Positions 25,216 to 26,670 of a stretch of DNA of 64,000 nucleotides are shown in pieces. The notes beneath the pieces are model-generated. The model ran no database searches. It was not told the origin of the DNA and worked only from the letters and a program-made list of their open reading frames with translations. This DNA comes from Hypanus sabinus (Eukaryota), in NCBI RefSeq assembly GCF_030144855.1, contig NC_082709.1, positions 24,180,001-24,244,000 on the forward strand, given 5' to 3'. How positions within the stretch are numbered: the stretch's first letter is position 1; every line of letters begins with the position of its first letter. The position numbers were made by a program, and so were the translations under genes.

Positions 25216-26670
25216 CAGTTGAAGTTGGAAGTTTACATACACTTAGGTTGAAGTCATTAAAACTCATTGTTTAACTACTCCACAGATTTCATATTAGCAA
25301 ACTATAGTTTGGCAAGACGTTGAGGACATCTACTTTGTGCATGACACGAGTAATTTTTCCAACAACTGTTTACAGACAAATTATTTCACTTTTAATTGAC
25401 TATATCACAATTCCAGTAGGTCAGAAGTTAACAAACAAAATAAAAAGAAATCAGCCAAGACCTCAGAAAAAAAAATTGTGGACCTCCACAAGTCTGGTTC
25501 ATCCTTGGGAGCAATTTCCAAATGCCTGAAGGTACCACGTTCATCTGTACAAACAATAGTACACAAGTATAAACACCATGGGACCACACAGCCGTCATGC
25601 TGCTCAGGAAGGAGACGCATTCTGTCTCCTAGAGATGAATGTACTTTGGTGTGAAAAGTGCGAATCAATCCCAGAACAACAGCAAAGGACCTTGTGAAGA
25701 TGCTGGAGGAAACAGGTAGACAACTATCTATATCCACAGTAAAATGACTCCTATATCGACATAACCTGAAAGGCTGCTCAGCAAGGAAGAAGCCACTGCT
25801 CCAAAACCGCCATAAAAAAGCCAGACCACAGTTTGCAAGTGCACATGGAGCCAAAGATCATACTTTTTGGAAAAATGTTCTCTGGTTTGATGAAACAAAA
25901 ATTGAACTGTTTGGCCATAATGACCATCGTTATATTTGGAGGAAAGAGGGTGAGGTTTGCAAGCCGAAGAACACCATCCCAACCGTGAAGCATGAGGGTG
26001 GCAGCATCATGTTGTGGGGGTGCTTTGCTGCAGGAGGGACTGGTGCACTTCACAAAATAGATGGCATCATGAGGAAGGAAAATTATGTGGATATATTGAA
26101 GCAACATCACAAGACATCAGCCAGGAAGTTAAAGCTCAGTTGCAAATGGGTCTTCCAAATGGACAATGACCCCAAGCATACCTCCAAAGTTGTGGCAAAA
26201 TTGCTTAAGGACAACAAAGTCAAGGTATTGGAGTAGCCATCACAAAGCCCTGACCTCAATCCAATAGAAAATTTGTGGGCAGAACTGAAAAAGCGTGTGT
26301 GAGCAAGGAGGCCTACAAACCTGACTCAGTTACATCAGTTCTGTCTGGAGGAATGGAACAAAATTCCAGCAACTTATTGTGAGAAGCTTGTGGAAGGCTA
26401 CCCAAAATGTTTGACCCAAGTTAAACAATTTAAAAGCAATGCTACCAAATACTAACAAAGTGTATGTAAACTTCTAACCCATGGGAATGTGATGAAAGAA
26501 ATAAAAGCTGAAATAAATCATTCTCTTTACTATTATTCTGATAGTTCACATTTTTAAAATAAAGTAGTGATCCTAACTGACCTAAAACAGGGAATGTTTT
26601 CTAGGATTAAATGTCAGGAATTGTGAAAAACTGAGTTTAAATGGTGTATGTAAACTTCTGACTTCAACTG
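25216..26670 (+). mobile_element. Sleeping Beauty-like Tc1 (DD34E) transposon, 1455 bp, IR/DR ends
   Basis: TA TSDs; ends CAGTTGAAGTTGGAAGTTTACATACAC and GTGTATGTAAACTTCTGACTTCAACTG; inner DRs at ~25412-25433 and ~26460-26480. Confidence 0.95.
25437..26455 (+). pseudogene. Inactivated SB-type transposase
   Basis: KEISQDLRKKIVDLHKSGSSLGAISK...WFDETK...FQMDNDPKH...SPDLNPIENLW...NATKY*. Start codon deleted, +1 frameshift in the A-run at ~25470, four in-frame stops. Confidence 0.92.

Follow-up and report, generated by a model that had tools for sequence, protein, structure and literature searches.

The 64,000-nucleotide stretch of DNA analysed here (the window) contains at positions 25216-26670 a Tc1 (DD34E) element. 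TA duplications flank it, its ends are of the IR/DR type, and four stops interrupt its single transposase frame. This copy is a dead, internally deleted cut-and-paste DNA transposon, and within the Tc1 (DD34E) family it belongs to the Sleeping Beauty (SB) clade. Sleeping Beauty itself is a reconstruction from dead salmonid Tc1 copies and is widely used as a gene-transfer tool. We hold with high confidence that the window copy is a dead SB-clade element in a myliobatiform ray, and that its lineage entered by horizontal transfer, multiplied near the stingray-Mobula split and then decayed. Our comparisons support the horizontal transfer of an SB-type element as the explanation for the ray copies.

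The element starts with CAGTTGAAG, preceded by TA, and finishes with CTTCAACTG, followed by TA. CAGTT can be read directly at both ends. We assigned the following features (window positions; a point stands for no strand):

25214-25215,., left TA target-site duplication, read directly; TA likewise flanks the salmonid copies
25216-25432, +, left IR/DR end, with inverted-repeat pairs I1, I2 and I3 and a salmonid alignment of 82-87% over 214 nt
~25216-25247, +, left outer transposase-binding repeat, part of the left IR/DR end; binding predicted from SB likeness
25405-25432, +, left inner repeat remnant, severed by the internal deletion, half of the repeat being left
25432/25433,., junction of a 171-nt internal deletion, seen as a gap in alignments with the O. 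mykiss (L005) and Coregonus (L002) copies
25433-26455, +, transposase pseudogene in a single frame (the frame reads 25430-26455), from translation, Pfam, PDB 2M8E/5CR4 and copy alignment
25445-25591, +, PAI helix-turn-helix subdomain of the DNA-binding domain (2M8E residues 7-55, E 3e-20; PF25787)
25652-25654, 25745-25747, 26234-26236 and 26300-26302, +, internal stops, from translation
25889-26269, +, catalytic core with intact DD34E triad (154-aa alignment to 5CR4, E 2e-87)
26453-26455, +, natural stop, from translation
26456-26670, +, right IR/DR end, with repeat families D1, I1 and I3
~26458-26489, +, right inner repeat, within the right IR/DR end
~26641-26670, +, right outer repeat, within the right IR/DR end
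26671-26672,., right TA target-site duplication, read directly

The two outer repeats (25214-25242 and 26644-26672) complement each other at 93% over their terminal 29 nt. The inner right repeat (26458-26478) lies ~185 nt in from the right end and is a 95% match to either outer repeat. A weaker copy of the terminal motif is found inside the left end. In this IR/DR layout, both outer repeats and the inner right one are present with a match of 93-95%, and the inner left repeat is halved. A preliminary description of this DNA had reported a complete element with TA duplications and IR/DR ends; the duplications and the IR/DR organization stand, but the copy is not complete and lacks 171 nt and 12 nt. 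The larger deletion takes the inner left direct repeat from its midpoint on, together with the 5' UTR, the start ATG and the opening codons. The 12 nt are gone after 26642 in the right repeat, in comparison with all six other copies and also with the loose ends of sequencing contigs. Contigs from three other organisms leave the window sequence exactly at both deletion points, and their loose ends read '...CATCATGGG' just before 25437. Because the start codon is lost and the frame contains four stops, the window copy cannot produce transposase; the intact frame of ~340 codons with a start codon that characterizes an autonomous element is absent. Half of one of the four binding sites is lost as well, and the copy is therefore at best poorly mobilisable.

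The transposase frame has four internal stops and no frameshift. Three of the stops (25652, 25745 and 26300) are CGA in other copies, which bears out the earlier suggestion of CGA>TGA decay at CpG sites, and the copy alignment identifies the fourth (26234) as TGG>TAG. Pfam matches include HTH_SB (PF25787; 64 bits, with a threshold of 43), HTH_Tnp_Tc3_2 (34.8 bits against 31.5) and pieces of DDE_3. Together with the PAI match to 2M8E, the Pfam hits define a bipartite paired-like helix-turn-helix DNA-binding domain. The triad codons are found at 25889-25891 (Asp), 26162-26164 (Asp) and 26267-26269 (Glu), spaced by 90 and 34 residues. The element thus carries the decayed DD34E transposase that had been proposed: its triad is intact, the spacing is 34 and the frame is broken by four stops.

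We compared the pseudogene with the known structures of SB. The 83-residue piece encoded by 25985-26233 aligns over its full length with the SB100X chain in 5CR4 (E 1e-41), the alignment of a longer stretch free of stops covers 154 residues (E 2e-87), and the C-terminal 50 residues align to the SB structure with an E value of 4e-22. The catalytic domain of SB100X contains the engineered changes RKEN214-217DAVQ, M243H and T314N (PMC4820933), and the window retains the natural RKEN, M243 and T314 at these sites. When the engineered sites are set aside, 137 of the 154 catalytic residues are identical to SB (~89%). The preliminary description had counted six differences from SB in the 83-residue piece and had noted that RKEN and FQMDND are retained. 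We find six natural differences once the engineered SB100X sites are discounted, and both motifs are present on comparison with SB100X in 5CR4; the alignments are as strong as described there. Its further claim, that the left non-coding inverted repeat aligns throughout, holds at 82-87% over 214 nt for natural salmonid copies, which we compared in place of the repeat of the SB vector. The PAI domain, linker, DD34E core and C terminus all align with SB10/SB100X (2M8E, 5CR4) free of gaps. Unlike these proteins, the window copy is a natural, decayed ray sequence with four stops, no start codon and one truncated binding repeat; it differs further by ~3.5% private mutations, and the ray lineage by ~2.5-3% lineage-specific changes.

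In a word search with a 162-residue piece of the translation, nearly all matches were fragments from salmonids (Coregonus, Salmo trutta and several Oncorhynchus), with identities of 75-85%. The non-salmonid matches were two Prochilodus proteins and one ray protein, the latter a Mobula hypostoma gene model into which transposase sequence has been incorporated. We compared the window at the DNA level with the Mobula hypostoma locus, two Coregonus copies (from Coregonus suidteri), one O. mykiss copy and one Prochilodus copy. The window element matches a Coregonus copy at 91.4% of nucleotides along 1247 bp and at 86.8% in the left end. When substitutions only are counted against the three salmonid copies (Coregonus and Oncorhynchus mykiss), the coding part is 89-92% identical, the left non-coding end 82-87% over 214 nt and the right end 91-95%; the right end is 93-95% identical to the Mobula copies (205-212 nt). 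The Prochilodus copy is far off (K2P 0.24-0.36, coding part 82% identical). Members of the SB clade are defined by coding identity above 80% to one another and by CAGTT ends, and SB and SB-like elements share 61% (Jia et al. 2022, PMC9777934). The window element falls within this definition, with 89-92% to the salmonid copies, 82% to Prochilodus and CAGTT at both ends. It shares with the SB elements of Salmoniformes (e.g. SB-Oncmyk, PMC9777934) the ~1.6-kb architecture, the CAGTT ends, the TA duplication and the IR/DR structure, and it differs from them in its cartilaginous host and in that the ray copies form a clade of their own, with 24 fixed differences in 963 sites. By sequence similarity, salmonids are the nearest relatives among those sampled, rather than a demonstrated donor.

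The host can be placed with a gene located 10 kb from the element:

14905-15621, -, PHOSPHO2, single coding exon (Pfam Put_Phosphatase, E 2.5e-86)

PHOSPHO2 of the window is 92% identical to that of Mobula birostris, 84% to Pristis, 83% to Rhinoraja, 68-76% to sharks and 63% to Callorhinchus. The elasmobranch host proposed in the preliminary description can be narrowed to a myliobatiform ray on the basis of the nearest match in Mobula, and a teleost host, listed there as a point to check, does not fit an identity of only 50-56% to teleosts (54% to Salvelinus). The 10 kb around PHOSPHO2 are collinear with the Mobula birostris locus and differ by a K2P of 0.083 over 8392 non-coding sites. Given these identities and the 10-kb synteny with Mobula birostris, the host is a myliobatiform ray other than Mobula. 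Arranged head to head with PHOSPHO2 is a gene with a TPH domain (16100 onwards, +; L003:1-5431), whose product in Mobula birostris has 591 residues. This gene runs towards the element, which probably lies within one of its introns.

We next set the divergence of the element against that of its host, using one gene, PHOSPHO2, as the yardstick:

Transposase frame, ray vs Coregonus: dS 0.095, dN 0.081 (decayed pseudogene copies)
PHOSPHO2, ray vs Salvelinus: pS 0.92 (saturated), dN 0.39
PHOSPHO2, ray vs Mobula: dS 0.093, dN 0.034

The ray element is as close to the whitefish element as ray PHOSPHO2 is to the PHOSPHO2 of another ray, and transposon divergence is far below host synonymous divergence as measured with this one gene. 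The preliminary description had called for exactly this comparison of dS values, and its outcome (0.095 against saturation) favours horizontal transfer. The transposon tree conflicts with the host tree: among the six sequences compared, the ray clade connects with those of salmonids at 0.03, and the characiform copy is 0.24-0.36 away. It had also been argued that the non-coding identity is hard to explain by vertical descent, and this interpretation is supported by ends that are 82-95% identical and by a dN close to dS. Since dN approximates dS and the non-coding ends are conserved, selection on the protein cannot account for the similarity. Cartilaginous fishes parted from bony fishes over 400 million years ago, and vertical descent of the element through so long a time can in practice be excluded.

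To describe the ray lineage, we calculated a tree and the distance between ancestors, with the rays represented by the window copy and two Mobula fragments and the salmonids by three copies. Pairwise K2P distances are 0.066-0.072 among ray copies, 0.078-0.108 among salmonid copies and 0.093-0.132 between the groups, and therefore the ancestral ray and salmonid elements lie ~0.03 apart. The maximum likelihood tree contains one ray clade (100/100) with a stem of 0.032 from an unresolved salmonid star, and tips of 0.035 for the window and 0.044 for Mobula. The Mobula hypostoma copies carry the same ray-specific states as the window, and these are absent from the salmonid copies. Rays and salmonids are separated by fixed differences at 24 of the 963 comparable sites; 6 are located in the non-coding ends, and those in the frame comprise 6 synonymous and 12 nonsynonymous changes. 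Polarised with Prochilodus as the outgroup, 12 of the fixed differences look like changes on the ray side and 8 like changes on the salmonid side; neither group is clearly nested within the other, and the sites indicate no direction of transfer. Host divergence from Mobula amounts to ~0.042 per lineage. As the ray tips (0.035-0.044) are close to this value, the copies date near the parting of the two ray lineages. The transfer appears from these distances to be old rather than recent, and the lineage is shared with Mobula. Fossil-calibrated work places the pelagic stingray ancestor in the Late Cretaceous (PMC7614867). As the copies date near the ray split and the pelagic stingray ancestor is Late Cretaceous, the transfer is probably tens of millions of years old, if the host is taken to be a benthic stingray. 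The identity and anatomy of the element, its host, the contrast in divergence and the ray clade that includes Mobula are shown by the data, and from these we infer the transfer, its age and the single entry.

The stingray and Mobula lineages may instead have been invaded separately, or may have exchanged the element from ray to ray, after their split. The ray copies differ from each other by a K2P of 0.066-0.072 and a dS of 0.070, that is, by less than the host non-coding K2P (0.083) and the PHOSPHO2 dS (0.093), and this places activity at or after the stingray/Mobula split. The difference is small, however, and comes from three copies. The 24 shared fixed differences and the single ray clade require that separate entries came from one source lineage, and a single entry with continued activity in both ray lineages fits the numbers equally well. 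We regard repeated transfer as unlikely, though deserving of some weight, and prefer a single entry.

The element could also be teleost DNA that contaminates the ray assembly or was wrongly joined to it. We examined sequencing runs in this regard. No indexed run contained half of the words of 24216-27670, and we compared the contigs of four runs with the window. The low-coverage contigs of run X1 cover both flanks and the element; the flanks are ~100% identical, with 0-1 differences per contig, and run X1 comes from the host or a close relative. Contigs of three other organisms match the element only, in 67,000-217,000 pieces each, of which 16-22% are at least 99% alike. Most of the differences between the window and these organisms are differences from run X1 as well, and thus represent private mutations of the window copy, two of the stops included; about 10 of 40 listed positions separate the host-like run X1 from the three other organisms. 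The non-host runs with the most words in common with the element contain it in huge numbers; such DNA is therefore common in sequence archives, a point in favour of contamination. Against this, the TA-flanked element is embedded in ray DNA, ~4 kb past the end of the stretch alignable to the Mobula birostris PHOSPHO2 locus (L003), which reaches window position 21124; the window is free of gaps, with no N runs; contigs of host-like run X1 cover both flanks and the element; and an independent assembly of Mobula hypostoma has identical ray-specific substitutions that are not found in salmonid copies. An assembly artefact is accordingly very improbable. Vertical inheritance of an element present in jawed vertebrates since before the cartilaginous/bony split and kept similar by constraint has in its favour that related Tc1 families occur in many vertebrates (PMC9777934) and nothing further, and has a negligible chance of being correct in view of host synonymous sites that are saturated (pS 0.92) at a transposon dS of 0.095, of a dN close to dS and ends 82-95% identical that speak against protein-level constraint on the copies, of the stops and deletions these copies bear, and of a public-genome survey that found the SB clade in zero cartilaginous fishes.

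We propose the following history. By analogy with SB, the live transposase would have bound the two direct repeats within each long inverted end, paired the ends, excised the element and pasted it into a TA dinucleotide, thereby duplicating the TA. The lineage most probably reached rays horizontally, either from the lineage that populated salmonids or from that lineage's own source, and the ancestor of the sampled ray copies was ~2.5-3% distant from the ancestor of the salmonid copies. Multiplication in rays probably occurred around the time when stingrays and Mobula parted, and the ray copies have since been decaying neutrally, partly by loss of CpG.

In a survey of public genomes, Jia et al. 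(2022, PMC9777934) recorded the SB clade from 107 ray-finned fishes and a single mollusc, and SB-like elements from ray-finned fishes as well as from a bird, an echinoderm and a cnidarian. Among teleosts, SB-clade copies are reported from 33 orders. Our SB-clade copies come from the window ray and Mobula hypostoma, and the 2022 survey lists none in cartilaginous fishes. Its sole cartilaginous fish is Callorhinchus milii, with a ZB-like element (PMC9777934). This element resembles ours in being a Tc1/DD34E transposon with a TA duplication and inverted ends of ~200 bp; the coding sequence of the ZB-like clade is, however, only 52-54% identical to the SB group, and that of the window is 89-92% identical to SB-clade copies. 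Skates and rays contain far more Tc1/mariner elements than do sharks and chimaeras, according to a 2025 study in which transfer goes unmentioned (PMC12361510). Horizontal movement of Tc1/SB elements among aquatic vertebrates is well established, and Tc1 elements are known to cross vertebrate classes, as they did between teleosts and lampreys (Kuraku et al., PMC3516227). The teleost/lamprey transfers (PMC3516227; 2020, PMC7070016) are similar to the ray case in crossing classes of aquatic vertebrates with a transposon similarity far above that of the hosts, and they differ in the Tc1 lineage and in the recipient class. The main texts of PMC3516227, of PMC7070016 and of large vertebrate transposon-transfer screens make no mention of sharks or rays, and transfer in sharks and rays is likewise unmentioned in a 2026 preprint on Mobula genomes. 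The novelty lies in the cartilaginous fishes as a new host class; the SB lineage and the process of transfer were already known.

Relatives of SB in nature had been thought to be almost confined to ray-finned fishes, and cartilaginous hosts can now be added. The ray copies provide a further case of transposon transfer across vertebrate classes, and leave views on how such elements work or move unchanged. Sequence change is slow in ray genomes, and the ray copies therefore represent an old snapshot that is useful for dating and polarising the spread of SB. A more speculative proposal, which we consider quite improbable, is that myliobatiform rays have their own long-active sub-lineage of SB, derived from a cross-class transfer at about the Late Cretaceous, and that some ray retains an uninterrupted, functional transposase ~97% identical to the reconstructed SB. 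If true, nature would have sampled SB sequence space a second time, independently, and the history of the SB lineage would gain a dated reference point.

The SB-type element of the window is nested in another repeat, which comprises 23729-25022 (-) and the right flank from 26673. The contigs of run X1 contain joints from 25040 to 26762 and from 25102 to 26915, as if derived from other copies of the nesting repeat without the insertion. We considered these joints as a candidate empty site and rejected this reading, as the coordinates are not exact; they are probably other copies of the flanking repeat. The stop-free pieces in 23729-25022 (-) (119, 91 and 60 aa) were examined as a decayed hAT-type transposase; Pfam returned no match, and we make no claim for them. 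A second SB-type structure is found in Mobula hypostoma (OY992592.1, L001:3541-5652), inside LACTB2. This element has two right ends: an inverted right end (element positions 1455->1036) abuts element positions 274-1455, and 574 nt of other DNA are located at 4608-5181. The NCBI model 'LACTB2 isoform X2' (P0156) includes transposase sequence as an exon, which is probably an annotation artefact. The longest open frame of the window, at 60316-61908 (-), encodes 530 aa and has no Pfam match. Decayed frames of non-LTR retrotransposons (RVT_1, zf-RVT) are present at 28080-31092 (-) and 5470-6408 (-), the first within a stretch of 30% G+C.
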